Source: Macrostomum lignano
Taxonomy: Eukaryota
NCBI GenBank assembly: GCA_002269645.1
Contig: NIVC01000271.1
Location: 372,001-436,000 of the forward strand
Length of the DNA: 64,000 nt
Reading direction: 5' to 3'
Below are positions 1,098-37,100 of this stretch, one piece after another. A program made the translations under genes and the position numbers. Each line of letters opens with the position of its first letter. Position 1 is the stretch's first letter. The notes under the pieces were generated by a model that searched no databases, had not been told where the DNA came from, and worked only from the letters and a program-made list of their open reading frames with translations.

Positions 1098-4000
1098 CTA
1101 ATCTAAAAGACAAATCTTTTTATCCAGTGGTGCATCGGCTGGCTCATCGGCTAGCTCATCGCGTAGAGCATCAGGTGGCTCATCGCGTAGAGCATCAGGT
1201 GGCTCATCGCGTAGAGCATCAGGTGGCTCATCGCGTAGAGCCTCGTCACGTAGAGAATCAGGTGGCTCATCGCGTAGAGCATCAGGTGGCTCATCGCGTA
1301 GAGCATCAGGTGGCTCATCGCGTAGAGCATCAGGTGGCTCATCGCGTAGAGCATCAGGTGGCTCGTCACATAGAGAATCAGGTGGCTCATCGCGTAGAGC
1401 ATCAGATGGCTCATCGCGTAGAGCATCAGGTGGCTCGTCACATAGAGAATCAGGTGGCTCATCGCGTAGAGCATCAGGTGGCTCATCGGCTAGCTCATCG
1501 CGTAAAGCATCAAGTGGCGCATCCAGTGGTGCACCAAGTGGCTCATCGGCTGGTTCATCGCGTAGAGCATCAAGTGGCTCATCGGCTGGCTCATCGGGTA
1601 GCTCATCGGGTGGCTCATTGGGTGGCTCAGCTGGTGGCTCATCGCGTACAGCATCATGTGGCGCACCCAGTGGTGCACCAAGTGGCTCATCGGCTGGTTC
1701 ATCGCGTAGAGCATCAAGTGGCTCATCGGCTGGCTCATCGGGTAGCTCATCGGGTGGCTCATTGGGTGGCTCAGCTGGTGGCTCATCGCGTAGAGCATCA
1801 AGTGGCTCATCGGCTGGCTCATCGGGTAGCTCATCGGGTGGCTCATTGGGTGGCTCATCGGCTGGCTCATCGCGTACAGCATCAAGTGCGGCATCCGATG
1901 CTGCATTGGGCGGTGCATCGGGTGGCTCATCGTGTGGTGCATCTGACGATGTATTGGGTGACACATTAAAATGTGCATCATGTGGCACATCCGGAAGTGC
2001 ACCTAGTGGTGCACATGGTGGTTCATTAAGTGACAAATCGGGTGGTGCATCGAGTAGCGCATCCGATGTTGCACCGGGTGCTGCACTCGTTGATGCAATC
2101 GTAGGTGGCGGACTGTAATACTCGTACTTGTTTGAATCCCAGCTGACACTTGGTTTGTGCTGCTCTGAATCCGAACCGTCGGTCCAATTTAGAGCGAATC
2201 TTGGAACCATTTCGGTGTCTGGTGTCACATCGAGTGGTGCATCGAATCTTACTATCGGTGGCGAATTTCGTGCCGCATTCAATGGTGCCTCAATTGGCCC
2301 ACTAAATGTGGCGTCGTGTACCACACTGCGCTGATCGTCTCGGCAGCTCTCGTTTAAGAGGTAGTAGTTTTCTGAAGTACTCGTTGAAACCTTGCTTGCA
2401 TCACCTACTAAAGCGCCGCCTGAAATCCCAGTTTGATGCGTAATTAAAGGTTTTAAAACATTTTTCAGTAGTTCAATATCAGCATTTTCTTTCCCAACAG
2501 ACTGCTCAGAACTATTTAATGAGCTGTAACGTCTTTTGCAGACGATAATTATCACAATGGTTATAATTACAAGGACCACCAGAATCGGACAGGAAACTCC
2601 AACAATTACAGCCAAGTTAGCTGCTGGAGCTTCAGTTGAGGTCTGGCCTAGCACTTTTGCGGTCCATTTCTGTCGCGGCGTTTTCAGAATTTTCCAAATG
2701 ATCGTCTTAGCGATACAGCTGGCTGGATAGGGTCCCGCAGTGCCTCCTCTCTCAGGAAACTTTACAAGAAATGGAATCTGGCTGCTACAGCTTTTCGATT
2801 TGATTTCCGCTCTGTCCGAAGCATCCACATTCATAGTCACGCACGGACCTGTCGCGCCGTTTGACTCTCTGTAGTTATTTAAAGGTGGTTCCTGATTTAC
2901 TCCCAGCTTATTTTTCATAGCCTCTTCCGTTTTACAGAGATGAGAGGGAATTACTCACACAAAACCCTCAGATCTGAGAACAGGCTTCAATCCACATTCA
3001 CCGCTATCCTGTCTGATTAGAGAGAGCGCTGAGGCATCGGCTGCACTGTAGAACATGCCGAGACGCACTGGCTGGCTCAGGCTCAGAGGCCGTCTGTACG
3101 GATGCACTGATAGTCTGGCCGTGTCTGAAAGCGGTTTTTGATGCTCATTTTTATAGTAAAGTAGCCATGGAAATTGAAAACAAATTATCATAGTCACAAC
3201 TCACTTGCAGCAATGAGACTGCGGATCTCAGACATGCTGGAGAAGCTGGCCAGCTGAGCATCGCCTCTGATGCTGGACATTGCGGATGTCACATTGGCTC
3301 TGAGTTCGCTCACAGCGTAGCAGTTTCCGTTGAAGCTGAGCATGTCTCTGTGGCAGAGTCCAGGGAGAATCAGCAGGAGTCTCAGCTTTACCTGGGTGGC
3401 ACGTTGATACCTCGGATCCCAGCTGGCCTCCACCGTGAGCGGGAACCTAAAATAGCAATGTGATTTTAGTTTCCCAATTGTCGGAACACAAGTATTTTGG
3501 TCGAGTGGAGACCGTAGCGCAAAGTCATAGTGCTTGTTGACCTGAACGCCTTTATGCCCGAGAGATTTGACCGAAATTGAACTAGAAAGCTCCTAGAATT
3601 ATTGATTAACTTTAACCATTGTATATTTTTATACTCGTAGGCAAGGTAAAACATCTTAGATCTAACAATATATTTTAGCGTCTTGTTATTTGTACCTGAG
3701 GACATCTAGATTATACGAAAAGACCAACTAACTACCCAAACTGTATTTCCCGCAACTAGTGTTTCTATTGTAAATAAGTTAAGCAAAAGCATTTGTAAAT
3801 AATTTAATTGTTATGCTGTATTTTCTCACAGTATGGTCGCTAACTAGTCTGAGAAAGAATAATGTACGCATTTGCAGAAATGCGCACTTCATAGCAGACT
3901 GAACTGCCATGGAACTTTCATGGAACAACCATGGAATTACCGGGGACTTTCTACGGAATTACCGTTTGATGTTTTCAGACTGTTGCCACTTTTCAATTTC

Positions 4001-5332
4001 TATAGCTATTTGATCCAGTTTTTATTTCAATCGCACCCCGTGTGAGCTATATCCATGCTCGTGCTCTATGTCAGTAAAATGGGCATGACTGTTTGCTGTC
4101 TTGAGTAGGTCTCCATTACGTTTTTTTTCTCAGTTTGAAAATTTTCAAGCACCAAAGGATCTCTGTATCTCATTGACGAACATGGATTTTTGTGGTTGGA
4201 CGCGAAACATTCCAGCCGTCACGGGAATCTCTCCTCCGCTGTAGCTGATGACCAACTTTGCTGAGCCAGTTTGATTCTCTCCCGATTGTAAGCGCAAGTC
4301 GGTGTTGTCGGCAGAATCGATGAGCACTCCCTGTAGGACAAGCTGCATGTCTTCTTGAGCAGCAGAATTCTTAATGATCCACCTGCATCTCCTGTAGCTC
4401 GTATCCAACTCGTCCGTCAGCACTCTCGGAATGATGCTCTCGTCTCGGGGGAAAAAATCGTCAACTGTTATCAGCAATGTGAGTCCATTCGCGCAGTAGT
4501 GGTTGGCGCCTTGGCAACTGGAATAAACAGTGGCACAAACTGGTGAACCAGTGAAAAACATTGACCAGAGTTTTTTAAGACTGAGAGGTGAGAGCCAGCA
4601 AAAATTTAAGAAAGCGACTTTGCACGAATACAGTTAACCTTCAACTGGGCCTTGGAATCAGCAAAAAATAATGGATGTTAAGTCATCGCTTTTGGGCGGG
4701 TGCTAGAAATTGTGAAAATGAGCTTTCTAGAAAAAGCTTAGCTGCAACTGTTTGTACAATGCTGTCTGAGTGTTTGCGTAAATTGTGTTTCATACAGTAT
4801 ATGGTGGTGACCCTGATGCCATTGTCTCCGACAGGAGGAACCAGCTGGCGCGCCGCGAAACTCCTCAGGAAAGTTTTCAATTCTGCTTCAAGAGGCGACT
4901 TGGGTATGGAGGCTGTGCAGCTGACTGACACGCGAGAGCGTGCCCTGAACGTGCGCTGGGGCGTGAGAAAGAATGGGGGCGGGTGCAGACAGCTAGGGAA
5001 GGGGGTTGACTCAGACACATGGGCCGAAGGGGGGTAAGGCTCATTCACACTGCCATCAATCGAGCCACCAAAGCACACGACCAATGTACAAAGAAATCAA
5101 ATTTGATGCACAAATTGCTTGATTACACGAAATTTGGTCTTATTTAATGGCAGTGTGAACGAGCCTTAAGAATTGCAATGCACGGTCCGCCCGTCTGACC
5201 AAGAGCTCGAGTCTGCCTATCAATGGAATTATACAGAAACAACAATTGTGTATAAAATAGTTACCTAGGGCCCATCAGCAGCAGAAACACCACCAACACA
5301 ACTGTCAAAGTCGGAAATGATAAATTCAGCAT
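1098..5332 (-). CDS. Paralog A: signal peptide + CUB-like + atypical CTLD + TM + long acidic/Pro repeat tail (~860 aa)
   Basis: Exons 5332-5265 (MLNLSFPTLTVVLVVFLLLMGP), 4517-4182, 3446-3205, 3124-2959, 2868-1098. All introns GT-AG with matching phases 2,2,1,2; total 2583 nt = 861 codons. CUB-like SIIP..RCRWII..LVL; CTLD-like CHRDMLSFNGNCY..LASFSSMSE..GPCVTM..SC..FLVK; TM LAVIVGVSCPILVVLVIITIVIIIVC followed by KRR. The 4182 donor (AT/GTTCGT) is weak but aligns exactly with the donors of B and C. Confidence 0.85.
1132..1960 (-). repeat. Coding tandem repeats in the tail of paralog A (24-bp DALRDEPP units plus higher-order duplications)
   Basis: Unit CATCAGGTGGCTCATCGCGTAGAG on +, in frame within the 1098-2868 terminal exon. 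Confidence 0.9.
5037..5166. mobile_element. ~130-bp MITE in intron 1 of paralog A
   Basis: TIR AGGCTCATTCACACTGCCA ... TGGCAGTGTGAACGAGCCT with TA on both flanks; a related element lies at 35640-35757. Confidence 0.65.
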
Positions 5333-6547
5333 AATTAAACTGCCGACTTCTTTTTAGCCTTGAGCAGACTACTCGTAATAAGTCACCAGTTCAAAGTTCA
5401 TAGTTTGATTCTGTTTCAGTATAGCCTTAGAATATAAGTTGTATAGCTTTACACAGAGCATCTTTTTTATGCTTAAATAGATTCCCTCATTTTCATCCAC
5501 CGTACAGAGTACCGAGCAGTATTGTTGAGGCTAAGCAAATGGAGGTTTATAAGTGCACACTTTTCTCTGCATCTCTGACAGATGTATTGCATAGCTGTAC
5601 GCTACACTCGTATGCATGTACTTTTTGCGCACAGAGTTTTTGTGGATAATTATAGGTGCTTCGCTAAAGAATTTTAGCACCTTGTAACTCTGCATCTCTG
5701 CTTCTATTTACGAGCAGAATACTTCTGCTAGTAAACGCTAGTAAACAAAGTATTATGCTTCTCTCGAAAGCATTCTACGAGTATATGATTTAGCAATTAG
5801 AATGCTGCACTCAGGATGCTTGGATTAAATGAACTGATTCCAGAGATCGGACCGGAAAATATTAATTCTGTTCTAAACAAACAACTCCTTTTTTGCTGAG
5901 GATGATAATTTCAGAGAAAAACTGATGTAGCTCGTACATCTATGTCACAATAAATCACTTGTTATATTGCAATACCCTCACTACAGGAATACTTTTTCAT
6001 GCATCATGCAACAACAAAAATCACGGGACATTTTTGGCTAAATGCAAGTTTTTTCTGTGCTGCTGCGCGTTAAATGTCAGTAAGAAAGTGGTCAGAAAAG
6101 TTTTTGGCAAAGTGAATCATTTAGAAAAAACTAAATATATCGATATCAATTAATAAATTTTCACACTGTTTTTGGTTCTACGTCAATGTAATTAACTTAA
6201 ATGAATCCGGTTATTTTACAATTTGATCAATGACAAAAATTTTTATCATTCCAAACTCAGAACTGTCAACTCAGTTTGGAGATAAGAAAGCTGTCCATAA
6301 GGTCTGTGAGTAAAACTTGTTCTGTTTCCGGAGTTGAGCTATTCCTCTTGGCTCGAATATGAGCTATGCAATGGCCCAGAACTCGAACTGTTCACTTGGT
6401 AATCCAAGCTAGACTGTGATCCACCTCACAGTTCACGCTTTCAGTCCCGGTTCGAGCGAAACTGCAAGACAGTTCAGAGTCGGAGCCGTTCATCCGATTC
6501 GGAGGTAAACTCTTGAGCCTTTCCAAGCTTGAGCTGTTCCTCTGGAA

Positions 6548-7017
6548 GGGTCGCCATCATAAACCCGAAAAATCACAACTCCGAAAGCACTTCCCATCAT
6601 AAACCCGAAATATCATAAACCCGAAATATCATAAACCCGAAATATCACAAACCCGAAATATCACAAACCCGAAATATCATAACTCCGAAAAACAAAATAG
6701 CAACGCCCATCATAAACCCGAAATATCAGAAACCCGAAAAATTACAACTCCGAAATTAATAGCAACGCCCATCATAAACCCGAAATATCAGAAACCCGAA
6801 AAATTACAACTCCGAAATTAATAGCAACGCCCATCATAAACCCGAAATATCACAAACCCGAAATATCATAACTCCGAATACCAAAATAGTGTTGGACATT
6901 GCTAAAACTTTCGGATTTATGATATTTCAGGTTTGTGGTATTTCGGGTTTATGATATTTCGGGTTTATGATGGAAAGCGCTTTTCGGATTTTTCGGGTTT
7001 GTGATGCCCCCCCCCCC
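6548..7017. mobile_element. Non-autonomous inverted-repeat element built from CATAAACCCGAAATAT subrepeats
   Basis: Tandem CATMAACCCGAAATAT copies at 6556-6880 and reverse-complement copies at 6905-7006; ends G..GCCATCATAAACCCGAAAAATC versus GATTTTTCGGGTTTGTGATGCCCC. No clear TSD. Confidence 0.6.
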
Positions 7018-7289
7018 TCTGTGCTCCGTTTGCTATAAAATTAAAAGCTGAGCCACATCAGCAGCTGAAGCAGCGCACCTGACGAAATCCGAAATAGTAA
7101 AATCGGCATAACAAACTGCCGTCATGGTGTGGCACGCTCGTATTTTATTGTTAAAGTGAACTGATTTTTAATTTTGAGCAAACTCATAAATCAACAGTTT
7201 AAACTTGATTGAAGTAGATGTTTAAGTTGTTTAAAAAATTATATTTTACATAGCGAGCCGTCTTATTTTTATAATAATTATAACAATAA

Positions 7290-7527
7290 CTGATTACATA
7301 TGTCCAAAATAGGCCAGATGCGCAACCGACAGCTCAGCCGCAGCTATTGCCCATACACACACCCTCAATTACCCCAGCTAATGCTGGTGCCCTTTTTACA
7401 GCTGGGTGAACTGAAGCAATGCAGAGTTAAGTGTCATGCTCAAGGACACAAATTGTTCCAGTGGGATCGGGAATCGAACCCCGACCTTTAAGTCGTGAGT
7501 CCGACGCTCTAACCAGACTACAGCCCC
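7290..7527 (-). mobile_element. tRNA-derived CORE-type SINE, copy 1
   Basis: Minus strand has A-box-like TAGTCTGGTTAG and B box GGTTCGATTCC, then GTGTCCTTGAGCATGACACTTAACTCTGCATTGCTTCAGTTCACCCAGCTGTAAA resembling the MIR CORE domain; close match to 57437-57722. Confidence 0.8.
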
Positions 7528-8157
7528 TAGGCTTTTAAACAGTAGCATTTCTGTTGGAATTATTTATTTTCATCAAACATACAAGGGCACTGACACAGTA
7601 TGGTCCTACTTAAGCAAATGAAACTTCATGAGTGCACACTTTTTCTGCATCATCATTGACAGATTCAATGCTTACGTACAATTTTGTGCAAAGTAGTTTT
7701 ATGATGGTAAAAATAGCTACAGACTACTTTTTATGAAATTAAATATCGTTGCGAAATTTCGTTCTTGTGAAGCGACGCCTGGCGTGTTTAGTAGTAGACA
7801 ATGTTTTCTCTTTCCCGTTTCTCAACGTACTGTTTCACCACCTTAAACCGTCTTTTTTACCTGCTTCGTTTCAACGAAGATAAGACATAAAGCAATCTGG
7901 CCTCTCGGATACTGTTTCTACCCTAAACTTTAGCTATCTTATAAGTTCCGTATACTCATCAGCTAGCAGAATATCTCAACTCACTCTAAAGAAGGGACAG
8001 CGATGCTCAGTCAAGATAGAAAATTTGATGTCCATTTAAATAAATTTTATGCTTTTAGAATTAAAAGTCAGATGCAGATATTTACACAGCTATGGTAAAA
8101 ATAATAATATTAATATTAATCTCACGCCCCGCTCCGACCACAAAAGGCACATAGCCC

Positions 8158-9830
8158 TTCGACAGTACCCCCAAGGACAGTGCCCATTTTCAAGGACTGC
8201 GTCCATCTTCAAGGACAGCGCCGATCTTCAAGGACATTGCCCAAATCAGAGACAGCGCTCATCTTCAAGGACAGTGCCCATCTTCAAGGACAGTGCCCAT
8301 CTTCAAGGACAGTGCCCATCTTCAAGGACAGTGCCCATCTTCAAGGACAGTGCCCAACTTCAAGGACATTGTCCATCTTCAAGGACAGTGTCCATCTTAA
8401 AGGACAGTGCCCATCTTCAAGGACAGTGCCCATCTTCAAGGACAGTGCCCATCTTCAAGGACAGTGCCCATCTTCAAGGACAGTGCCCATCTTCAAGGAC
8501 AGTGCCCATCTTCAAGGAGAGTGCCCATCTTCAAGGTCAGTACCCAACTCAGAGACAGCGCCCATCTTAAAGGACAGTGCCCATCTTCAAGGAGAGTGCC
8601 CATCAAGGATATGTATACAATAGTAACTTCTATTGGTCCTTGGTGCCCATCTTCAAGGACAGTACCCAACTTCAAGCACAGTGCCCAACTTCAAGGACAG
8701 TGCCCATCTTCAAGGACAGTGCCCATCTTCAAGGACAGTGCCCAACTTCAAGGACATTGTCCATCTTCAAGGACAGTGTCCATCATCAAGCACAGTACCC
8801 AACTTCAAGCACAGTGCCCAACTTCAAGGACAGTGCCCATCTTCAAGGACAGTGCCCATCTTCAAGGACAGTGCCCAACTTCAAGGACATTGTCCATCTT
8901 CAAGGACAGTGTCCATCTTCAAGCACAGTACCCAACTTCAAGCACAGTGCCCATCTTCAAGCACAGTGCCCATCTTCAAGGACAGTGTCCATCTTCAAGG
9001 ACAGTGTCCATCTTCAAGGACAGTGCCCATCTTCAAGGACAGTATCCATCTTCAAGGACAGTGCCCAACTTCAAGGACATTGTCCATCTTCAAGGACAGT
9101 GTCCATCATCAAGCACAGTACCCAACTTCAAGCACAGTGCCCAACTTCAAGGACAGTGCCCATCTTCAAGGACAGTGCCCATCTTCAAGGACAGTGCCCG
9201 ACTTCAAGGACATTGTCCATCTTCAAGCACAGTACCCAACTTCAAGCACAGTGCCCATCTTCAAGCACAGTGCCCATCTTCAAGGACAGTATCCATCTTC
9301 AAGGACAGTGCCCATCTTCAAGGACAGTATCCATCTTCAAGGACAGTGCCCATCTTCAAGGACATTGCCCATCTTCAAGGACAGTGCCCATCTTCAAGGA
9401 CAGTGCCCATCTTCAAGGACAGTGCCCATCTTCAAGGACAGTGCCCGACTTCAAGGACATTGTCCATCTTCAAGCACAGTACCCAACTTCAAGCACAGTG
9501 CCCATCTTCAAGCACAGTGCCCATCTTCAAGGACAGTATCCATCTTCAAGGACAGTGCCCATCTTCAAGGACAGTATCCATCTTCAAGGACAGTGCCCAT
9601 CTTCAAGGACAGTGCCCATCTTCAAGGACAGTGCCCATCTTCAAGGACAGTGCCCATCTTCAAGGACAGTATCCATCTTCAAGTACAGTGCCCAACTTCA
9701 AGGACAGTGCCCATCTTCAAGGACAGTGTCCATCTTCAAGGACAGTGTCCATCTTCAAGGACAGTGCCCATCTTCAAGGACAGTATCCATCTTCAAGGAC
9801 AGTGCCCATCTTCAAGGATGGTGCCCAACT
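8158..9830 (+). repeat. 19-bp minisatellite (AAGGACAGTGCCCATCTTC)n, about 85 copies with variants
   Basis: Direct reading; the 19-aa periodicity (HLQGQCPSSRTVPIFKDSA) in all three + frames is what a stop-free 19-nt unit produces. Confidence 0.95.
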
Positions 9831-10230
9831 TTGCCCAACCAAGAAATATTTCCTGCCAGTGACAAGTGTGGACACTATTGCTTACATTTTAACGGCACAG
9901 CATGACTCTTTACCTTTTAATTTTTATTTACCGCTCTCGATCGATGCTTTGCTTTCGTATTTGTTATAATAATAACAGCAGCTTGTTCTAACAAAGCTTT
10001 CTCTAGCTAAATAATCAAAGAAGAAATGCAAGCAAGGGTAAAAATCGCATTCGATTAGCTTGTATTGTCATTATTGTTACGGTACAAGAACTCAAAACGT
10101 CTTGTAAACGTTTCTACATTTTCCTAGAAACGAAGTATCTTTTTCGATAGAGTGGCCTTTGCTCATTGGTTAAATAGAACATCGCGATCAACTTTCATGT
10201 GATGCATATACAACAAAAAGGAACAAGGAG

Positions 10231-10588
10231 TACTATTGCTTTTGTCAGCCTAACTGAGAATAAAGCCACCCAAAATGAGAATCCTGCCTACGCTGACCGC
10301 GAAGGGCCCGGCTGCGTGCAGCCTTAGTCTATGGGCCATAGACAATAAAGGACAAGCAAAGTGATAAAAAGCCATCCAATGTGAGAATCGATTGGTCTAT
10401 GCGTCGTATTCTTTTATTTTTATACCTTCTGAGCTTCTGAGCCATATGACTAGCCAATCATAGCTTATCCTTTATAGTCTATGGCTCATAGACTAGGCTG
10501 GACGCAGCTAGGCCCTTCGTATTCAGCGTAGGCAGGATTCTCACTTTGGATGGCTTTACTCTCAGTTAGGCTGACAAAACCAATAGTA
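10231..10588. mobile_element. MITE-like element with ~110-bp inverted arms ending internally in GTCTATGG..CATAGAC palindromes
   Basis: 10231-10343 is the reverse complement of about 10477-10588 (TACTATTGCTTTTGTCAGCCTAACTGAG / CTCAGTTAGGCTGACAAAACCAATAGTA). Confidence 0.7.
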
Positions 10589-10899
10589 TAAACTATACAT
10601 TGTCACTATCACTATTGCATAAACATGTAGCTAGCTATTATAGATAAAATATTAGTATAGAAGTCCTTGGCCGTAACTTACGCAGAAAGACGATAAATAA
10701 AGCTTCTCGGAAACTTTGTAAGCCAATTAAAAAAATCACATTACTAACTTCTTTCACTATAGGAATTAGGTACTACAAAAACAAATTTAGGAAAATTAAT
10801 ACATTTTGGCTTGGAGCCTCTATTTTGTTTCTAGCTAATGAGTATAGATGTTTAGTAATTCTTATGAGTGATTTATACTTGGTATAAATGGGTGAATCA

Positions 10900-11320
10900 T
10901 GCGACCCAGTGATTAGCTCAGGACAGCGTGTTGCAGTGGTCGCACTTTGGTGGCGAGTGCTCTTCGCCCCGTACAACGCAGATGCCTCAACCTCGTAGTG
11001 TTCAGAAAACTGTCAGTGGCACACAGGTCGTTATTCATTCAGATGAACAGGAAGCGATCGCACAAGTTGAGGTCAGGACTTTGAAACAGTGTTCCGATGC
11101 TCCTCTTTTCGAAGTAGTCCTGTACAGTCCTGCTTGCATACGGTCGTACAATTGTGAAATTGTCCCACTGAGCGCCACGAATCGCCGGTTCGTTTCACAA
11201 ACTAGACAGTGCGTTCACCAACAAATGTGCGGGGCTGTAGCAGAAATAGGAAAATCGCTTGTTCGGAGTGAACACCAAAAGCAGCATTGTTTTACGAGCG
11301 CTGATCTGCTGTCGTTTAGC
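10900..11320 (-). mobile_element. Degraded Tc1/mariner-superfamily transposase fragment
   Basis: Minus-strand translation KTMLLLVFTPNKRFS ... QWDNFTIVRPYASRTVQDYFEKRSIGTLFQSPDLNLCDRFLF matches the WDNARPH and (Y)SPDLNxCDxFLF motifs; contains stops; TIRs not found. Confidence 0.7.
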
Positions 11321-11768
11321 TTTGTGTTGCACTAGGGTTGAGGCTCACTCGCAAAATTATACTGATGCTGCTTCCAATGCATGTCTATGTCTGAAATTGC
11401 TTTGTCTGGCAGCTGACGCTTCTTACTTTTAGATTCTGCTACAACCGTACAGCCAATTTGGATTCCAATTGATTTTCGTGATATATCTCGAGTCGCATGA
11501 TTACCCAGATGCCGGTAATATGTAATACAGTACTCCATGGATAGTATACGTGGATGTAATATTAGAAGCAAACGCGTGATTGTTCACAGACCAGATATCA
11601 ATAATTGCCGATTCGAAACAAATGAACAAATATTTCTTTGAAAATCAACTCCGACGCTGAGTCAAAATGAGCTGTAAAACTATTCAATAAAGTTATCCTC
11701 TCCGCTCCCATTTGGTTCGAAACCGGTGCTCTCCAACCGATCCAGTGCCAAACCCTGTCGAAGGTCTT

Positions 11769-14700
11769 CTACTTCCATTCTTCCATTGTTTCTGATCTGT
11801 TTGAAATACTGTGAAAGGTTTCGTTCATGCTGTCCATGCCATCTGGTGCTGAACTGTAATACCTATCCGAATCAAGGCTGGTCATTCTGTTTAAGGAGGA
11901 CAACGTTGGATTAGACGTCCCGTCATGTTGTTCATCAGGTGTGGAATTTTGTGCATTTTCAGGTGTAAAATCAGGTGGTTCTTCAGGTAGGCCACCAAAA
12001 GGAAACGAGTCCGGAGGCAGACAGCTGTAGTAATTGTCTGAAAGCCAGCTGTCGTTTAGTTCGGTGCCAGATTTCGTATCGGGTGGTGCATTAGATGGTG
12101 CATCAGGTGGTGCGTCAGGTGGTGCGTCAGATGGTGCATCAGGTGGTGCATCAGATGGTGCACCAGGTGGTGCATCGAGCTGTGCATCGAGTGGTGCATC
12201 AGGTGGTGCATCAGGTGGTGCATCGAGTGGTGCATCAGGTGGTGCATCAACTGTCCCACCAGAAGTAGTCACATCGGGTTCCAGACTGTGCTGATTGGCT
12301 AAAGACGAGCTAGCGCTTGGGTTTTTTGGAGTGCCAGCAGCAGCATCGACTTTATCACTTTCTGAAGCGTCTGCTGGATTCCTAGGTTTTGATTCAATTA
12401 AAGGTTGTGAAACACTGCTCAGTTTAACATCTTCTTTCTCCACAGACGGCTCAGAACTATTTAATGAGCACAACCGTCTTTTGTAGACAATGAACACCAC
12501 AATGGTTGCAATAAGTACCAGCATAATCGGGCAGGAAACTCCTAAAATGATGGCCAATTTGCTTGGTGAAGCTTCAGTTGAGGTCCAGTCTCGTATTGAT
12601 TGAGTCGTTGCTGTTGGTGATATTCTAATACCGGTAATTAGATCAGAAGAATCTCTAGCGACAACACTAGTAGCATCAGTATCTGCAATGAAATGCATCT
12701 TAGTTGTCTGCTTCTGTTGCAGTGCTTCCATAACTCTCAAAATGACCGCCTTCGCGCTACAGCTGTCTGCATTGTATATCACTGGGTCTCCTCTCTCAGG
12801 AAACTTTACAAGAAATGGAATCTGGCTGCTGCAGCTTCTCGATTTGATTTCCGCTCTGTCCGAAGCATCCACATTCACAGTCACGCACGGACCTGTCGCA
12901 GCGCCTGAATCTCTGTAGTTATTTAAAGGTGTTCCTGATTTACTCCCAGCTTATTTTCATAGCCTCTTCCGTTTTACAGAGATGAAACAGAATTACTCAC
13001 ACAAATTTCTCAGATCCGAGAACAGGCTTCAATTCACATTCACCGCTATCCTGTCTGATTAGAGAGAGCGCTGAGGCATCGGCTGCACTGTAGAACATGC
13101 CGAGACGCACTGGCTGGCTCAGGCTCAGAGGCCGTCTGTACGGGTGCACCGACAGTCTAGCTGTGTCTGAAAACATTTTTATGCTCGTTTTTATAATAAA
13201 GTAGCCATAAAAATTGAAAACAAATTATGAGAGTAGCAACTAACTTGCAGCAATCAGACTGCGGATCTCAGACATGCTGGAGAAGCTGGCCAGCTGAGCA
13301 TCGCCTCTGATGCTGGACATTGCGGCTGTCAAATTGGCTTTGACTTTGCTCACAGCGTAGCTGCTTCCGTTGAAGCTGAGCATGTCCCTGTGGCAGAGTC
13401 CAGGGAGAATCAGCAGGAGTCTCAGCTTTATCTGTGCGGCACGTTGATACCTCGTGTCCCAGCTGGCCTCCACAGTAAGCGGCAGCCTGAAGGCAGCGTT
13501 TGTTAAATTTTAGCGGGGTTTTTATATTTTTACTTAGGGCTGGCTGCTCGATGATTGCTCGCATCTATCCCTTCAGCCTATCAGTCAGACCAAGGTTTGT
13601 CGGCTTTTAAAGCCTGACTTGTGCCTTTCCTGTGCTGAATTCGCTGCACAGTCTGACTTATTCTACTCGCACTGTCTTTTAAGTTGAAGCGGCTTGTGAT
13701 TGGCTGATGTCGTTTTCTCTTATTTCTCTTCCCATCATCTCTCTACTCGGTAAATATTTGATTATTTATTCTGAAGGGAGCTGGAACACCGGAGGGACGC
13801 AGGATTGAGCGCGCATGACATTAGCACGCATTTTGAAACTGCTCTACGTGACACAAGCGCGCATTATCACTTCAAGTGGCAGCTTACTTTACTTTATCGT
13901 TCGTCTTTGTATTTGATCCAAAAATATTCAAAAACATTCCCGACTGGTTTCGTATGCCTGTTTAATGCAAGATTTTTTTCTCTTGGGCTTGGGTCACAGT
14001 CATCGACTTATCTTTGAGGTGACTGCCGTCAAAACTGTCTGCGCTCTTGTGTCACTGCCGCATTCGCGCGCTTCTGCCTGTGCGCGCTTATGTCAAATAT
14101 TGTAAAAATATACGCAATGGCAGTAGCGTCTTGCGCGCTTATTCAGCCCTCCCCACCGGGGTACAGAGGTCACCCTCTTGGAGGCGTTTTTAAAATCAGC
14201 CTCTAGAATCTTTAACTATCTTGAGCAAATAAATTACCCGTTTGATGTGCTTAGCCATGTAATTTAAACTCATAAACGATCCTTACTCATGAGCAACATG
14301 TGCATTTTTCAGTACTTACAGCTGCCGGATTGGGCGGACGAGAAAGAGCCCTGCAGTTGCCAAAAGTTGCCCTCCCGAGCTGTTGAGGACAAGATCCGCC
14401 TGACTTTTCACGTTGTTAATGGACAGAGAAGATCCAGCTGTTGAATTTATCGGTTCTGCCAACAAGACAAGTTTTTGCATGTCATTTTCTGTTGCAGCAG
14501 CCTTGATGCTCCATCGGCAGGTTCGATTGCTCAACGGTCTGTTGTCATTGGTGTCGCCAAGAACTTCGGGAATGATTTTTACGTCTCCATTGTTGATGTC
14601 AATTGTAATTGGACTGACGACTCCGTTTGTGCAGTAGTATGTTTCGGCCTGGCATTCGGATCTATGCGTTTGTGTGGGTTATTTCTGTTTGGATACTTTT

Positions 14701-16078: not shown

Positions 16079-17178
16079 ATTTCGGACAGACCGAACAAAT
16101 TTTCTGCTAGCAAATTCAGTGAATACAGTGTCGTCGTACTTGTGGCTTTTCTGTGATATTACAACTGAGACGTCGAAAGATAACCCAGCCTTTTTACAAC
16201 CTATGCTATTAAATCCTTGCACAGCTGTGCAAAAGATCGAGCTGAGAATTTCATTGTACAAAACTCACTTGAAGACGTGAATAGTTTGATTGTACAGCGA
16301 ATAGACAATGAAGAAAAGTTTTTGAGCAAAAGAGCTAGACTTAGCTAACTGGAGAGGCTGGAATTGGAGCTGAGAGAAGATGAAGCGCGTTGCAGAGCTC
16401 ACTCAAATTGAAAGAGAGACGGAGAGACAGAGAATAATACTCGAGTAGCTGAGTATTGCTTATTCACCTCTGCTGCTCATTCTCATTCTTAGTAATACGG
16501 GTGTATCATGAGCTGACAAAGATGCCAAGTAGCTAGTAGTATTGCATGTTTGCAAAGATACCAGCTCACACATTTGCCTAGCATTTTCGGGTTTAATATG
16601 AAGTCGGTAAATTTTCTAGAGTTGCCTCCTGCATTAGTGAAACTCGGACTACACACAATACAGAACTTCTCAGCTGTACTCTTTATCAAAGCCAATCACT
16701 GAGCATTAGAACCATACAGCAATTTTTTATAGAGGCTTAAGCGCACGTTTAGAATCAAATTACAGAAGACCATTCTTTGTAGGCTATAGTATTTCTCACG
16801 AATGGTTTATTGGGATACATATATATTTATAGCTTATGCAGCTAAGGTTTGTAAGAGCTTAAGCTCGCTCATATTCTTTAGCATATTTAAAAAAACAATT
16901 TTAAATTCTGAATAATGATTAGTATCATCTTACGAGTACTACTGACCGTGAATCTTAATTCAATGACTAACCATTTCGATAGAAATTATCGAAAGAAGTA
17001 TGTTCTTTACGAAGCATATTGAAAGGAAAAAGACATCTTAAAAGCATCAATGAGAAATTTCAAAGTTTTAACAAGTATTGAAACATTAAACAGTTCTTAT
17101 ATGTAAAAAAAACGTCTTATACAGGTAGCTCGGCCACATTTTTCAAACAAGTTCCTTCATCGACAACGAAGCCCAAAT

Positions 17179-20019
17179 CTATTGCTGATCAGAGCTCGTG
17201 CTTGCCATCTGGTTTGAATCAGAATAAAACTTACACGTCTGGAAGTCTTCTTCGAAAATTGGCTGGCTTGGAGGATCTTGATGCTGATCAGAGTTAATGC
17301 TTTCCATCTGGTTTGAATCAAAATCAAACTTACACGTCTGGAAGTCTTCTTCGAAAATTGGCTGGCTTGGAGGATCTTGATGCCGATCAGAGTTTATGCT
17401 TTCCATCTGGTTTGAATCAAAATTAGGACACGTCTGGAAGTCTTCGTCGAAAATTGGCTGGCTTGGAGTATCTTGATGCTGATTAGAGCTTACTATTTGA
17501 TTTGGATCTTTGAACTGTTCTGGATCATCAGAATTTGTCGGATTTGGATTGCGATGCTGTTCCGGCCTTACGGCTTTCATGTGACTCTGACTCATCAAAC
17601 CTGTTGTGTACTCCTCTGGATCCTCAAAGGTGACATGTTTCGAATTTTCAGTTGATTCGGCAGTCTTTTCACCAGATGGATCAGCTGAGAGCCCAGGCTG
17701 CACATGTAAATTTGAAGATGCATTGGATTTAGCATTCGGCTGGGGCGGCTCGCTTACATAGGCGACCAAAGCAGAACCTTCTTCCTTTTCTAATTCAACT
17801 TCTTTTTTGCTATCATCCCGCATTGCTGTTCTTCTTTGCCTTTTTCGCCTCTTCTTTTTGAGCACGAAATATAATACAGAAGATCCAAGCAAAACGGCAA
17901 CAACTGCACAGATGACTGCAACTATTATTGGCAGATTGGTTTGAGAACTTTCTGGTGTTGTTTCGACCAGCAGCGTTGACATGGTAGTAGGCAATGCTGT
18001 GCTAGATGGTTTAGTAATCGTTGAAATGAAGTTAGCAGCCCTTTGCAATAGTTCTGAAATGGCTGTAACGACAGCCTGAGTATTGCAGCTTGTGAGATCA
18101 CGGTCAGCGCTTCTGCTCTCTGGAAAACTTATGAGAATTAGCATTGAACTGCTACAGTTCCTAAACTCGACAGACGCTTTGTCTGATGCATCAACTTTCA
18201 GGGTTGAGCATGGACCTGACACTGCAGCTGATCCACTGAAAGGCAAGAAATACTTGAAGTTTTAGAATGGACTTTTATATAAATAAAAACAAGACAGCAG
18301 CCATTTTCATTGCTGACTCACACAAACTCCTCAGCTGTGGCAACCGGCTCCAGTTCACACGCACCATAGCGGTTTCTTTTAGGAGAAATCATTGAGGCAT
18401 TGGCTGCACTGTAGAACATGCCGAGACGCACTGGCTGGCTCAGGCTCAGGGGCCGTCTGTACGGATGTACCGACAGTCTGGCTGTGTCTGAAACGTTTGC
18501 AATGTTAAATTCGAATAGAAATCGGAAAAGGTAAAATAAATTTGCTTTATTTTCAGCAACTCACTTGCAATTGTAAAGTTATTGATTTCAGTCATGCTAG
18601 AGAAGCTGGCCATCTGAGCATCGCCTCTGATGCTGGACATTGCGGCTGTCACATTGGCTTTGACTTTGCTCACAGCGTAGCAGTTTCCGTTAAAGCTGAG
18701 CATGTCTCTGTGGCAGAGTCCAGGGAGAATCAGCAGGAGTCTCAGCTTTACCTGTGCGGCACGTTGGTACCTCGGGTCCCAGCTGGCCTCCACAGTGAGC
18801 GGCAGTCTGAAGCATCAAATCAAATTGCAGCTTGCCTTTTTTTGATCACTAATTATATGCCTTTACTGGAAAGTATTCTCTACTTACAGCTGTCCGATGG
18901 GCAGAGCGAAAAACATTCCAGCCGTCACTGGAACTTTTCCACCGTTGTAATTTACGACAAAGTCTGCAGGACGTTTCTGCTCGCCTTTTGGCGGTGGCGA
19001 ACTTCTGTCCACTGTGGCATCCATGGTCACTCCCTGAAGGACTAGCGGTATTTCTTTTCTTGTCACAGAACTGTCAATGCTCCATCGGCAGCTCTTGTAG
19101 CTCAGTTCAGAGTCGCCGCTCTCACCAAATATCACAGGGACAATCGTTTCCTCTTGGTTTTGTAATTCGTCAATTTTTACTGGCCTGATCATATTATTGT
19201 TGCAGTAGTGATTCGCGGCCTCGCATTGGAATCTTGAAGGTGGAATGCGTGGAAGTTTTGCAGGTACATTAAAAAGTCTGGACCGACATCAATCTATCTG
19301 TATTCCTAGTTGCTTCAGGTAAATTTAGCCATCGAGTTTGCTAGTAAACTAAACTAACTAAACCATACTAAACTAAACTAGCGAGCCATAGGCAATTCGT
19401 TGTCACGCTTAGATTATTGAGGAAGTAGGTACAAAGTTGCTCAAAATTAGGTACAGAGATGAACAGAAAACCATATTTTTAGTTCGTAGTAACACCTCCA
19501 CACCTAATCACGCTAGAACACTTACTTTAAACACGTTATTAGTAGCAGGACAAGCACAGGATCGCATCTTTGACTCTGAAAAATTCGGCGAATTAAATCA
19601 ACCACCATGTTCGTTCGAAAACTTGTCATTCTATTGTACTTGCTGGTGATCGGTAGCTATTATTGGTATATTACAGGTATATTTACAAGTTACTGTAGGT
19701 AGGAGTCACAGCTTAATATAGCCAAAGCTCCAACTCCTTATTTAGGTATCTTATCATTTGAGCACGGGAAAGGTTGTTGTTGGGGCAGCATAACTCAAAA
19801 CAGTGGGTCGACCTTATCACTTGCTTTGTGCATATACAGTATGTTTTAACTAAATTTAAGTAGCTCGTAATTTGAGATTAGACAATTAAAACCGATCGAC
19901 AGTAAATAGGCTTTTGTACTTTTTTAGTTCCTTGTTTTTTGCTTAACAACTGACTTTACTGTCAACTGAGATTCCTAAATAAACTCTTTCTTTGCAAACA
20001 AGACAGGAACACTTACCAT
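17179..20019 (-). CDS. Paralog C: signal peptide + CUB-like + atypical CTLD + TM + tail with three ~33-aa repeats (~620 aa)
   Basis: ATG 20019-20017 then GTAAGT; exons 19575-19526, 19232-18888, 18806-18565, 18487-18322, 18235-17179; total 1863 nt = 621 codons. Same 50, 242 and 166-nt exons as B. N-terminus MSQRCDPVLVLLLITCLKFQCEAANHYC; TM LPIIVAVICAVVAVLLGSSVLYFVL-KKKRR. Confidence 0.87.
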
Positions 20020-21299
20020 ATCGTTATGCATGAGTATCTGGCCTTCATAAGCCAGTAGAATGCTGAGAACCTACTTGGCGGAAAGTTTTTCGTGTCAGTA
20101 TTGTACTGTTTTGCTACACAGAATGGAATAGCATACTTTTTTCTGCAAGTGCTTTTTATGCATTTCTCTTGTACGCTTAAATTGTACGTTACCCGTACGT
20201 ACTCGTACATACAGTGGAGACACAATATAGAAGAACTTTCTCACTTGCAAGCAGAAGAGAAAAGGCTTGGATCCAGAACCGCAAGCCCAGTAGCTGCCTG
20301 CTTTAGGCTAGTCGAGGACTGAAAATGAGAACGAATGTACAGCTACGGCACATGTAGACGGAAAATATAGAATGGAAAAGCGGAGTAACAGAACGACTGA
20401 GTAACAGAGCGACGGAGTGTACGGAGTGTATGGAATGGGGTGTACGGCTTATAATTTTACAAGCCGTACACTCCATTGGGCTCAAGAGAGAGTAAACCAT
20501 GAGTCACTACTCTCTACATAGGAGTATGTACTGTGTATAAATTTAACCGATACATTCGAAACAAATTATGATGGATTCACAGGAGAACGAGACTAAATTT
20601 AGAGATAAAGGAAGATTCAACTGGGATATATATGGTACCCATTTATATTAACAATTCACATTCTTCTAAAGACTTATAGCTGTATTTGAATTTTGTTTGA
20701 ATTTATATTGTCAGCCCAGTTGGTAGACGACATTTGACTGCTCCAATTTGACTGCCACAAATCAATAACGTGTACATTAACTTAACTTCTGGCACCCTCC
20801 CAGTGGTCAAGACAGAGAGCCGCATTCAAACTAACAAAGTTAAGCGGCTAACAAACCACCCGCACCACGCGAAGGCAGCAAAGCGAACGCCATGCTGCTG
20901 CCGTGCTGGTCCCTACGGATCTTCCAGGTAGCGCCGGGGTCACTAGGCTTAATTGTGTCGAGCCCCAGTCGTACTCGCTAGCGTCAAGGCTGACTCGGGA
21001 CTTCACCATGAAGACTTAGGCACCGGATGAATCTTCTAATACACATCGGTGGACCAATGGTATTGTTCAATTGCTAGCTTGTACTTCAGGTTGACGTCTG
21101 GCTGGAACGAGTTTTTGAGTAGCTCTTGGTGCAGGGGGAAACAAGCGTGACACAGGGGTTGAACTCGGATACCTGAACGCGTTCTGCGCAGGTCCGAGCG
21201 ATAACTGTTCGTGATGGCAGAAATGGGAGAACTAAAGCACTGGAGAACCTGGAGAGGTAGGACGCGACCTTCATGGGCCGCCAAAGGAGGCGGTGAAAC

Positions 21300-25065: not shown

Positions 25066-26864
25066 TTACACAATTCGCACACCGGAAACTTCTGACTTTG
25101 ATGGCTTAACAACCGCATAGCCTCCAAGAATGTTACCGCCCGCAGTTCGTATGAACCAAAGTTTCTGTACAGAGTTTGGCAGATAGTCAAAAAAGTAGGT
25201 CAAAATAACCCACTTGACAAACAGTAAAATTAATAACACAAAAATCGGCAGCAGAGTGATGATGGAGCCATAGAGAGCTGCATTTTCCCAGCGAGAACTT
25301 TTACTCTGCAGTATCTTTCCAACCGAATTAAAGACGCCGGTTTCTTCTAAAAGACGAATTCTCTGCAACAAATCATATTGATTGCAGCTGCTACGCTCCG
25401 ATGCTTGAGCAGTGATGAAGTCAGGCTCCATGATCAGCGAAGGCCTTGGGACGCTGCAGTTGCCGAAACCCAGAGCCGGTTTGCCGTCGTCTGCCGCTTT
25501 TAGTAGAAAGGCGCACGGACCGGCTGCGTTGCTGACAGAATGCCTGCTAAATCAAAGTTCAAAAAATTGTTATTACTCGACGAATTATACCGGCCCGAGA
25601 CCAAAGCGGTGTCCTAAGACTCAAATTGGCGATATGAGACTTAAAGCAGCACCCTGAGACCCAAAGTAGCGCCCTGAGACCCAAAGTAGCGCCCTGAGAC
25701 CCAAAGTAGCGCCCTGAGACCCAAAGTAGCGCCCTGAGACCCAAAGTAGCGCCCTGAGACCCAAAGTAGCGCCCTGAGACCCAAAGTAGCGCCCTGAGAC
25801 CCAAAGTAGCGCCCTGAGACCCAAAGTGGTGCCTCAATACCCAAAGTGGTGCCCTCTGAGACCCAAAGTGGCGCCCTGAGACACAAAATGACATCCTGAG
25901 ACCCAAAGTGGCATCCTGCATTAGCCCAAAAGTGGCGCCTTGAGACACAAAGTGGCATCCTGCATGAGACCCAAATTGGCGCCTTGAGACACAAAGTGGC
26001 ATCCTGCATGAGACCCAAAGTGGCGCCCTGAGACCCAAAGTGGTACCTTGAGACCCAAAGTGACACCTTGAGACCCAAAGTGGCGCCTTGAGACCCAAAG
26101 TGGCATCCTGCATGAGACCCAAAGTGACACCCTGAGATCCTGACGATCACCCTGACGACTCAGTGGCACTCCTACACAAAAATGCCGCACCTCAAGTGTT
26201 TGCATATACTTTAATTGTAGTAAAGTACAAAATGACACAAATCATAAACAAGAGCATTTTTAACTCACGTCAGCTCCGACAAATTTCCAATGGGAACCAG
26301 TCCGCAGGCGCCGCTCTGATTTCTGCTCAGGGCAAGCAGGATGTCATCAGCTGGTTCGTAGAGCAAGCCAACTCTGATTGATGGGCTGTGCTCGAACAAC
26401 TGGTGCAGCATTTTGCCTGAAACTTTGAAGGCAAATGAGTTCGTAAAGCTTTCACTCCAATATTCTCCGTTGAGTCAGTGTTCCAAAAATATGTTTTATA
26501 TGTGCATAAATGAAACCCAAAACTCACTGACAGCAAGAAAGTCATCAAGTTCATCTGTACTGGAGAAGCTGGCCAGCTCAGCATCATCTCCGATGACGGA
26601 GCTGATGAAGTCTGTCAAGCTCATGCTTGCATCGCTTCTATAGTAGCAGTTGCCATGGAAACTGAGCCTGCCCCGACTGCAAGCTGTCCGATTAGCAGCC
26701 TCAGCTGTTTCGCACCTGCAGATCATGATAATAAAATGATAAAAGGTAATGCAGTTTAATATTTAAGAAAATGAGTTTTTTAATAATTTCTTTGCTTACT
26801 TTGTGAAGACATTTAACGAAATGCAGAGAAAAAACGAACAACCGAATGTACATATTTTGCGCAT
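25066..26864 (-). CDS. Paralog D: short CUB-less form, signal peptide + atypical CTLD + TM (~292 aa)
   Basis: Exons 26864-26800 (MRKICTFGCSFFLCISLNVFT), 26715-26528, 26416-26269, 25543-25066; phases 2,1,2 as in the other paralogs; total 879 nt = 293 codons. CSRGRLSFHGNCY..LASFSSTDE..GACGL..GPCAF..GNC; hydrophobic ALYGSIITLLPIFVLLILLFVKWVILTYFF. Confidence 0.8.
25632..26135. repeat. 20-bp minisatellite (GAGACCCAAAGTAGCGCCCT)n with variants, in the last intron of paralog D
   Basis: About nine near-perfect units then degenerate 20/31-bp variants; explains the overlapping ORFs here. Confidence 0.92.
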
Positions 26865-31221: not shown

Positions 31222-31254
<33 letters not shown>

Positions 31255-34959: not shown

Positions 34960-37100
34960 TTAAACTACGCTCGTATCTGGTAGCATTTTTATATTTGCAT
35001 CCAACTGTCCGAGATTCGCACTGTCCCTCTTTACTGTTCGAAGTCGTGATATTAAGTGCAAGAAGCAAGGACACACAGCTACTTGCAGTAAACATGCAAT
35101 GGCGACAGCCAAAGCACGAGCCCAAATTCCTGCACAATTCTCCTCCGGATATTGTTTTGTTTGATTGCGAAGCATCCCTCCTGCCTGCAGAGGATATGCG
35201 TCTTTTTCCATCGACAAAACTTTTGGAATAATTTCTGGACAGAAACGGCTAATTATTCTTTTATCACTACGAGCAACTTGCGGAAATTTTATGAGCGCCA
35301 GAATCGAAGCGTCACAGCTACCGAACTCAACCAGCGCTTTGTCTGTTACATCCAAACTGAGATGAGCGCATGGACCGACAACAGTATTTGAGATTCTGAA
35401 ATAGTTTTACCCGTAGTAGCCAATAAATGCTTTTATTTGTGACATGTTTTGGTCCCAATTTCAAAGAGTTGTAGCTGGAGCCCCTCAGCGCACAAGAGAG
35501 GTATTTTTTAAAAGCTTGAAATCTCATATCGTCTAAGTCTTGATATCTAGCTAGTTGCACTTTTCTCTAGCTCGAAAACTTCACATTGTCCAGGATGTCA
35601 AAGATCGAGCTCGTGAAGTTGTTAAAGTATGAAGTTTTAAGCCTCGCTTACACCGAGGCCAAATAGGCTTTGTGTGTTTGACCAAATTCTGTGTGATCAC
35701 CCAGACTTCATTCCTTTTACATCGGTCGTGTGATTCTATGGCAGTGTGAATGGGCCTTTAGGTGGTTTATGAACTTTCGAGCTTGTGAAATATGGTTATT
35801 GCAGTGTTTTAACCTAACTCAAACAGATTATTTCGATGACTCACTTAAATGTCTCAAGTGTAGATAACGGTTCTAGACCGCATCCTGCACTATTGTTTCC
35901 TCTTTTTAGCATGGACACAGTTTGATCCTGACCATCGGAGCCGAGGAACATGCCAAGGCGGAGTGGAGTGGTTGACTCAGATTTAGAGGCCGTCTGTACG
36001 GGTACTCAGACTCTCGAGCGATATCTACAGAATATTTAATAAGAATGTGTATTGCTCGTGGACTGAACTTTATATTAAACAAGCTGTTGTTTTTACTACA
36101 ACTATTTAGCTTTAAGAATATACATCTTTAATATTATTCTACATTTACCCTCACGACACTTTTACTAGCAGGGGATGACAGGGCCAAATAAAGTAATAAC
36201 ATATTACTAAAAATTCGTAAGATGATAAATTTATCAATCATTGATTCGTAGTAGTTCTACGAATTTTTTCAGAACTTACTTGCTGCAACGAACTCGTTAA
36301 TTTCTGCCATGCTGGCGAAGCTGGCCAGCTCGACATCACCTTCAATAGTAGACAAAGCTTCAGTTAGATTTTGTTTAAAGGCACTCACGGCGTAACAGCT
36401 ACCATTGAAGCTGAGCATGTCATTGTTGCATATTCCTGGAATCGGGATCAGATAGCGAAGTCGAATTGGCGTTCTGCTCTGGATTTTTGGGTCCCATTTG
36501 ATTGTGTTAGTGAAGAGGTTTCTGAAACCATAGGAAAGCAGTTTGTTTGGTTAACAGAAAACGTCGGTATAGTTTTTAACACTATTTGGAAAACTTTATT
36601 CCTGACCTTCGACGCAGTGGGTACAGTCGAAACAATCCACGCGTTGCAACAAACGCATCTTCTTGCGAAACAACAATCAAGTCTTTACGGGCTGTTTCAT
36701 TTTCTCTGACCGCGACTTGCTCGTCTGGAGTTGTCTGAATACGTAACAATTTGAAGACTCTTCCAGGTGCTGGAGGTTCGAATACGAATTAACCATCTGC
36801 ATCGTCTGTAGCTTTTGTGCTGCGTGTCCAGCTCGTTTGGAATTCTGGGCACAATCGTTTCGTCCCGATGATAGAAGTTGTCGAGTCCTACACTAGTTGT
36901 CAGACCGTTGACGCAATAATGATTGGCCGCGTCGCAGCTGCCGTGATGAAGACACATATTTAATTAGTTTTGTATTTTTAATTTATGTAGATTCACTTCA
37001 TTGCTTGCTTGACTTACAATTTGACGCAGCAAAAGTTACTCTCAAAAAATAGCATCAAATAGATTACCACGATATGGGACCATCGAGGAGAGGCAAACTC
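34960..37100 (-). pseudogene. Paralog E: CUB-like/CTLD/TM gene with two frameshifts
   Basis: Exons 37100-37018, 36937-36607 (331 nt, should be 3n; TGA at 36697), 36521-36280 (242 nt as in A-C), 36024-35845 (180 nt, contains a CCACT duplication; 175 nt restores phase), 35395-34960. Homologous sequence resumes in the shifted frames (ENETARKDLIV..GLFRLYP; LRLGMF..AGCGLEP). ATG exon not found. Confidence 0.8.
35640..35757. mobile_element. Small MITE related to 5037-5166, in the last intron of E
   Basis: AGCCTCGCTTACACCG ... GGCAGTGTGAATGGGCCT degenerate TIRs. Confidence 0.5.

Follow-up and report, generated by a model that had tools for sequence, protein, structure and literature searches.

Three tandemly arranged genes of the flatworm Macrostomum lignano, designated here A, B and C, form a mosaic in which a middle segment is far more similar between the paralogs than is the exon upstream of it, and sequence comparison indicates that interlocus gene conversion is very probably the cause. 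The genes lie in a window of 64,000 nucleotides (positions 372,001 to 436,000 of the forward strand of contig NIVC01000271.1, GenBank assembly GCA_002269645.1; window positions below refer to this whole stretch), which holds a tandem array of one gene family, all on the minus strand, consisting of A, B and C and the divergent members D and E. The window was compared with one second locus, L001 (NIVC01000413.1:294172-317017), which was reached via protein P0002, is syntenic, and carries the homeologous copies C' and B'. The A, B, C, B' and C' variants were taken from the assembly consensus. A, B and C are old tandem duplicates, their synonymous sites in exon 3 being saturated. An earlier note on this DNA had proposed that recent gene conversion or unequal crossover homogenises a CTLD tract in these genes while the distal CUB domain diversifies.

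The family members share an exon layout of exon 3 (approximately 335 nt), exon 4 (242 nt), exon 5 (166 nt) and a long exon 6, which codes for the end of the ectodomain, a stalk, one transmembrane helix and a cytoplasmic tail of gene-specific tandem repeats. Introns 4 and 5 of A, B and C measure 77-90 nt in the minus-strand gene models. The features of the three genes, in window positions, were as follows.

~1098-4517, minus strand: gene A, family member
4182..4517, minus strand: gene A exon 3, most of the CUB-like domain; from open reading frame (ORF) and splice sites, donor GTTCGT weak but positionally exact
3447..4181, minus strand: gene A intron 3, 735 nt, without homology to gene B intron 3
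3205..3446, minus strand: gene A exon 4, 242 nt, last two CUB-like strands and start of the CTLD-like domain
2959..3124, minus strand: gene A exon 5, 166 nt
1098..2868, minus strand: gene A exon 6, end of the CTLD-like domain, stalk, transmembrane segment at ~2530-2600 and DALRDEPP-type tail; 618-aa open frame
2746..3451, minus strand: gene A copy of the A/B tract, from alignment and maximum-chi-square scan (A residues 114-289)
~11769-14661, minus strand: gene B, family member
14320..14661, minus strand: gene B exon 3, 99.7% identical to B' in L001
13487..14319, minus strand: gene B intron 3, 833 nt
13245..13486, minus strand: gene B exon 4, 242 nt
13001..13166, minus strand: gene B exon 5, 166 nt
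11769..12912, minus strand: gene B exon 6, with an insertion of 34 aa in the stalk as compared with A, transmembrane segment and DAPPDAPL-type repeat tail
12790..13491, minus strand: gene B copy of the A/B tract, from alignment and maximum-chi-square scan
17179..20031, minus strand: gene C, PAA86620.1 / BOX15_Mlig016100g1, 624 aa
19232-18888, 18806-18565, 18487-18322 and 18235-17179, minus strand: gene C exons 3, 4, 5 and 6, respectively; intron 3 only 81 nt
18403..18806, minus strand: part of gene C common to all three genes, spanning exon 4 and 85 nt at the start of exon 5; 88-96% identity, dS ~0.2-0.3, with a divergent exon 4 3' end and an unalignable intron 4 as interruptions

Self-BLAST aligned 2668-3451 with 12712-13491 at 89.8% identity over 784 columns (E=0). 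The core tract (A 3451-2746, B 13491-12790), identical at 650 of 702 positions (92.6%), consists of exon 4, intron 4, exon 5, intron 5 and the first 123 nt of exon 6. Nucleotide identity between A and B was 54% in exon 3 and approximately 41% in intron 3, which was unalignable and without local homology between the two genes (top local match 17 nt, E=0.07). It was 92.6% in exon 4, 84.6% in intron 4, 94.0% in exon 5, 96.6% in intron 5 and 93.5% in the first 123 nt of exon 6, and then 69% in the following 78 nt. Exon 4 was 85% identical at the amino acid level between A and B and 83% between A and C; exon 3 was 36-44% identical among the three genes (A-B 44%). The tract coordinates and the 242-nt exon given in the earlier note were reproduced by self-BLAST and by the gene models, and the protein identities agreed with its counts of about 11 (A/B) and 13 (A/C) differing residues out of 80 in that exon and with its estimate by eye of roughly 35-45% for the CUB exons. 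Its description of the two copies as nearly identical was right as to similarity and too strong for a divergence of 7.4%, and the two exons and two introns that it named are indeed included whole, together with the 123-nt part of a third exon, exon 6.

Breakpoints were located with a two-breakpoint maximum-chi-square scan of the codon alignment and with a Sawyer-type run test. The scan placed the A-B segment at A residues 114-289, with 6.5% difference inside and 38.7% outside (chi2 157); the A-C segment at A residues 114-224 (9.3% inside, 45.0% outside, chi2 130.5); and the B-C segment at A residues 111-224 (8.8% inside, 46.1% outside, chi2 144). The run test was significant for A-B (P=2e-4) and A-C (P=0.004). 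The A/B tract is accordingly a discrete segment whose divergence is significantly below that of both flanks of the same gene pair. Throughout most of exon 4 the three genes were roughly equidistant (92-94%), and the part specific to A and B started only near the 3' end of this exon.

In gene C, dS (synonymous divergence) from A/B was 0.26 in exon 4 and in the first part of exon 5 (5a) and rose to 0.94 in the remainder of exon 5 (5b) with the first part of exon 6 (6a), which, with the scan segment of residues 114-224, upholds the observation that C follows A/B only to mid exon 5. Since intron 4 and the last ~25 nt of exon 4 of C were unalignable with A or B, C has two separate patches in common with them.

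Between A and B, dS was 0.125 across the tract and 0.31 in exon 6 past the tract, while exon 3 gave a proportion of synonymous differences (pS) of 0.76, i.e. saturated, with a nonsynonymous divergence (dN) of ~0.5; adjacent exons thus differ more than 8-fold in synonymous divergence. Homogenisation extends to neutral sites, namely introns 4 and 5 and synonymous positions. With introns 4 and 5 and tract dS homogenised beside an unalignable intron 3 and a saturated exon 3, protein constraint is insufficient for this pair, and the comparison indicates that selection at the protein level cannot produce the A-B mosaic. No Rfam match was found in the window, so an embedded RNA does not explain the conserved introns. 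As a calibration, other family pairs with exon 4 at 88-90% amino acid identity retain ~67% in exon 3, as against 36-44% for A, B and C, whose exon 4 is therefore more similar than gene age predicts. Topological incongruence between regions was not found: A, B and C were each other's nearest relatives in every region compared, and for this reason the evidence consists of a shift in divergence and of reticulate site patterns and not of a changed tree.

The 5' exon was examined between homeologs, since paralog dS is saturated there. Exon 3 was 99.7% identical in B/B' and 98.2% in C/C' (1 and 6 substitutions, respectively), which is a divergence not above that of neighbouring non-coding DNA, and this comparison gave no sign of accelerated evolution or positive selection in exon 3. 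The mosaic would thus arise from a homogenised gene middle and not from a faster 5' exon, and the idea that the CUB domain diversifies was not borne out, as this exon diverged anciently and is now conserved between homeologs.

Comparison with L001 showed that exchange continued after the two loci separated. An 11-kb block was typically 97-100% identical between the window and L001, which fits the divergence of 1.9-2.4% in single-nucleotide polymorphisms (SNPs) reported among the three M. lignano subgenomes (PMC10733133). Identity dipped exactly at exons 4-5 of B and C, where divergence was 3-4 times that of the flanks. B and B' differed by 1.63% substitutions in exon 3 plus intron 3 and by 5.99% in the tract (Fisher 6e-7); C and C' differed by 4.2% from exon 4 to exon 5a and by ~1.1% in the flanks (P=5e-4). 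Within the tract the B-B' identity of 94.0% barely exceeded the 92.6% of A-B and the 93.3% of A-B'. At sites differing between B and B', both states recurred in other paralogs at 15 of 31 sites, where random point mutation would give 1.8 (P<5e-5), and the same was true for C and C' at 6 of 17 sites (0.57 expected, P=5e-5). From the start of exon 5 back through intron 4, B' carried the A-type state at 13 of 15 diagnostic sites and was 96% identical to A and 87% to B. The residues 'GFKG' were common to B' and C' in place of the 'SFNG' of A, B and C, and P0003, a third B-type protein, had A-type residues (GTAG, WK, PA) past the 3' boundary of B. This excess of paralog states at homeolog-differing sites indicates that exchange between paralogs continued as repeated short interlocus conversions after genome duplication.

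Exon 4 of B' (L001 16600-16841) contains an in-frame TGA (AGA to TGA, 'VKL*LLL'), so that this homeolog is pseudogenised unless the codon is a sequencing error. The B-type models of UniRef, P0003 and P0004, begin downstream of this codon. With its nonsense codon B' is a probably dead copy that still takes part in the exchange. The block containing C and B (window 12306-23191) was ~98% identical to L001, and only 70-87% identity was observed to either side of it (the D/E regions and the A-B spacer); either locus-scale homogenisation or flanking genes that are non-orthologous members of the array would account for the drop.

The divergence of A and B in the tract (7.4%, dS 0.125) was 3-5 times the homeolog background of 1.6-2.4%, and A-B was about equal to A-B'. 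On these grounds the tract-wide homogenisation of A and B predates the homeolog split, with only small patches exchanged later. The word recent, as used in the earlier note, therefore holds for the small patches only. Its proposal that gene conversion homogenises the tract agrees with the homogenised introns and synonymous sites, the boundaries on both sides and the paralog-derived patches that postdate the split; its other option, an unequal crossover, fits less well as a single event with a tract bounded at both ends.

That single event deserves consideration as a chimeric gene formed by recombination in intron 3, which would have joined an old exon 3 to the 3' part of a recent sister duplicate, with uneven divergence afterwards. 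All A-B sequence 3' of intron 3 is indeed younger than exon 3, as shown by the dS values of the tract and of the rest of exon 6 beside the saturated exon 3; at the 5' boundary the change takes place in one sharp step where intron 3 ends; and the intermediate dS of the 3' part may be accounted for in this way. However, a second sharp boundary occurs inside exon 6 (93.5% to 69%), the intergenic DNA 3' of A and B is without similarity, the boundary in C is a different one (mid exon 5), and the post-duplication patches common to paralogs within each homeologous locus are left unexplained, so that we regard this explanation as unlikely. An artefact of assembly or polishing, in which collapse, a chimeric consensus or mis-mapped paralogous short reads created the A/B similarity or the small patches, is more improbable. 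The reference assembly comprises three subgenomes diverged by ~2%, and 36% of its length lies in chimeric scaffolds (PMC10733133); the nonsense codon of B' and the frameshifts of D could be errors. Yet A and B lie 10 kb apart on the same contig with unique flanks and differ by 7.4% in the tract, which is also present in a second contig (B' 93.3% to A) and in gene predictions of other source (P0001, P0003, P0004). Chimerism between homeologs yields at most ~2.4% divergence and not 6%, and the 100-nt A-type patch in B', with 13/15 diagnostic sites switched, is hard to obtain via mis-polishing at 85-93% identity.

Least probable of all is an absence of exchange, with purifying selection on the CTLD-like core and a fast CUB exon giving the appearance of a mosaic through rate heterogeneity. 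In line with it, no protein segment in the whole family is more conserved than the exon 4b-5a core (11 invariant and 18 nearly invariant columns), similarity begins exactly at the exon 4 acceptor, and in other family pairs exon 3 is the faster-evolving of the two exons (67% identity versus 89% in exon 4). For A-B, nevertheless, it is refuted by introns 4 and 5, which are 85-97% identical next to an unalignable intron 3, and by the >8-fold gap in synonymous divergence; exon 4 is only ~70% identical in nucleotides between A and D, so conservation of synonymous sites is not inherent in this exon, and at 99.7% B-B' identity exon 3 is not fast now. Several points also weigh against interlocus conversion itself. 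In every pair the 5' boundary falls on the exon 4 acceptor, and selection clearly contributes to where similarity starts; the converted introns show no GC enrichment (32-39% GC) and hence no signature of GC-biased conversion; the Sawyer-type run test was not significant for B-C (P=0.37); the unalignable intron 4 of C, lying between two similar exon patches, needs two short tracts or some other constraint; A', the presumed donor of the B' patch, was not seen, as L001 ends ~0.7 kb before its expected position, and look-ups by way of P0003 and P0004 yielded no record of A' or of a third locus; and polishing with mis-mapped paralogous short reads could mimic small conversion patches.

With interlocus gene conversion preferred, we infer both a molecular mechanism and its direction from the observed mosaic, breakpoints and paralog-shared variants. 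Repeated non-reciprocal transfer of short tracts (up to ~0.7 kb) would have overwritten the middles of the genes. For A and B, homogenisation would have come about in a single older event or in several and would reach from the exon 4 acceptor to about codon 289 of exon 6, with introns 4 and 5 inside it, and exon 4 with the first half of exon 5 would have been exchanged among A, B and C. After whole-genome duplication patches of ~100 nt would have been exchanged, the nonsense-codon copy B' being involved. Strong purifying selection on the family-wide core (SSIRGDAQLASF...PYRRPLSL.QPVRLGMF) may keep the homology needed to seed heteroduplex, and tracts would end where homology was no longer available, namely in intron 3 and in the portion of exon 6 that codes for the stalk. 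The conserved core thus probably explains both the persisting homology available for exchange and the position of the 5' boundaries at the exon 4 acceptor.

The predicted architecture is that of a type I membrane protein with a CUB-like domain, a CTLD-like domain, a stalk, a transmembrane segment and a repeat tail. Searches with Pfam CUB (PF00431) gave no match at E<=1 in A, B or C and none at E<=10 in 11 family members, and Lectin_C (PF00059) gave no match at E<=10 in any family member or in distant relatives; Pfam on exon translations and family members returned only transmembrane noise. The automatic UniRef name is 'CUB domain-containing protein'. In an AlphaFold2 model built from the family alignment, residues 1-140 had a predicted local distance difference test (pLDDT) score of 62-86, and Foldseek matches to this part in the PDB were almost all CUB domains (C1r CUB2 at E 3.6e-4, Neto2, neuropilin a1, MASP, PCPE-1, spermadhesin), with a probability of 0.95-1.0 and a TM score of ~0.5 on single-domain targets. 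The model therefore supports, with moderate confidence, a CUB-like fold for the N-terminal domain. Exon 3 codes for three Cys (positions 1, 8 and 44), including a C-x-W-x-I motif, 'CRWII'; a second Cys pair was not evident by eye.

For the second domain the model was unusable for a fold search (pLDDT 30-47 in the full model, 37.7 alone), and the order of elements predicted at this low pLDDT, beta-beta-alpha-alpha-beta-beta-beta-beta, is compatible with a CTLD. All 10 of 10 PDB matches of the domain 2 profile were CTLDs (among them DC-SIGNR, CLEC4M, antifreeze II, CD69 and MRC2) in the correct register, with a best E of only 0.02 and only the beta1-alpha1-alpha2 half aligned. The profile matched only 37 representatives among 1.84 billion proteins. 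By eye, neither the canonical C1-C4 disulfide positions nor the WIGL Trp seems to be present. A CTLD-like identity is thus plausible but unproven. Of the two domain names used in the earlier note, CUB has moderate support at the level of the fold and CTLD has marginal profile support only, and Pfam supports neither. The last two CUB-like strands (residues 115-137) are encoded by exon 4, and the fold runs ~28 residues into this exon; hence neither the exon 3/4 junction nor the tract boundary is a domain boundary, and a clean division into a homogenised CTLD and a divergent CUB domain does not hold. In exon 4 of gene B a nearly invariant Cys of the family is lost ('NCYAVS' to 'SSYAVS'), and it is kept in B', A and C.

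The assembled ectodomain of gene A, used as query in a homology search, retrieved 11 proteins, every one from Macrostomum lignano, and UniRef protein P0001 was identical to gene A. An exact-protein look-up matched window positions 7179-30031 at 100% identity, in reverse orientation, to contig NIVC01000271.1. On the homology search the family is Macrostomum-restricted; it is also undescribed. Candidate distant relatives P0026 and P0034 look like low-complexity false positives and were rejected. P0012 is a fused model of three tandem family members from a different array. An NCBI gene model of 823 aa (~7179-16204, minus strand; L002 13828-22853) begins upstream of B and passes the A-B intergenic repeat; not being among the ectodomain homologs, it is probably mis-joined or repeat-derived.

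The two further members of the array in the window were the following.

34984..36936, minus strand: paralog D, divergent; exon 4 ~52% identical in amino acids and ~70% in nucleotides, apparent frameshifts in exons 3 and 5
25069..26762, minus strand: paralog E, very divergent; exon 4-, 5- and 6-like ORFs

The frameshifts of D are at ~36745-36704 (exon 3) and ~35990 (exon 5), and D is probably a pseudogene if these are not assembly indel errors; it lies outside the exchange group. The tails of A, B and C differ in the type of in-frame repeat: DALRDEPP-type 8-mers in A (1119-2085), DAPPDAPL-type repeats in B (12078-12262) and a 33-aa unit in C (17183-17492). Their divergence would reflect repeat turnover and not substitution. 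Intron 3 is 81 nt long in C (18807-18887) as against 735 nt in A and 833 nt in B, and since the A and B introns have no common homology, they seem to have expanded independently.

Between A and B lies a 1.7-kb tandem array (8162-9831, 57-nt register, copies 85-90% identical), and a related array at L001 18604-19395 is only ~70% identical to it. An inverted repeat of 2.9 kb (arms 38712-41576 and 43315-46178, 99.86% identical, ~1.7 kb apart) has a GC content of 52-55%, many short tandem repeats and no ORF that convinces; candidate explanations are a recent palindromic duplication, an element with long terminal inverted repeats and an assembly fold-back. A 367-aa ORF (28195-29298, minus strand) contains reverse-transcriptase motifs of the non-LTR (long interspersed nuclear element, LINE) type and sits in a stretch that is missing or shorter in the homeologous locus (window 27608-34943 versus L001 1718-3700).

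Interlocus (ectopic) gene conversion is known in tandem receptor and immune genes, including MHC class I/II, KIR, the C-type-lectin-like receptors Ly49/NKG2, globins and opsins. The present case resembles MHC- and KIR-type conversion in its tracts of hundreds of bp that include introns, its sharp boundaries in divergent paralogs, its mosaic donor patches, the participation of pseudogene copies, and a divergence of alleles or homeologs raised exactly in the converted exons. It differs in that an uncharacterised flatworm-specific family is involved in a neopolyploid genome of three subgenomes, that the conserved core is converted and not a hypervariable ligand-binding surface, and that there is no evidence that exchange creates selected diversity. 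Proteins combining CUB and C-type-lectin domains include those of C. elegans clec genes with CUB domains and vertebrate attractin; as a lead only, these have in common with the present family a CUB-like beta-sandwich at the N-terminus with a CTLD-like module after it, a setting that is extracellular or of type I membrane proteins, and lineage-specific tandem expansions, although here neither Pfam CUB nor Lectin_C is matched at E<=10. Homoeologous exchange and gene conversion after whole-genome duplication are known in plants, teleosts and Xenopus. Paralog-type patches on two homeologous contigs and exchange that went on after duplication are features in common with such polyploids, but exchange was detected here between tandem paralogs within each locus and not demonstrably between homeologs. 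The phenomenon is ordinary for tandem receptor duplicates, and what is new is the instance in an undescribed flatworm family; a literature search retrieved no report of interlocus gene conversion in M. lignano.

A bolder proposal, which we consider doubtful, is that these genes form a Macrostomum-specific repertoire of surface receptors in which ongoing patchwise conversion among tandem copies and homeologs diversifies a recognition domain, with nonsense copies such as B' as reservoirs. If true, it would be a flatworm analogue of MHC/KIR or of pseudogene-templated diversification, strengthened by neopolyploidy. Automated annotation of these arrays has yielded models that are fragments or fusions (P0001, P0012 and the 823-aa model next to C). 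Exons 4 to 6a of these genes are unusable for orthology, homeolog assignment or dating, and approaches based on subgenome-specific k-mers or SNPs would be misled within such tracts. The results define an undescribed, apparently lineage-restricted family of membrane proteins with CUB-like and putative CTLD-like domains, and, in a free-living flatworm model, provide a quantified case of probable interlocus gene conversion whose general interest is modest and which matters in practice when the polyploid M. lignano genome is analysed.

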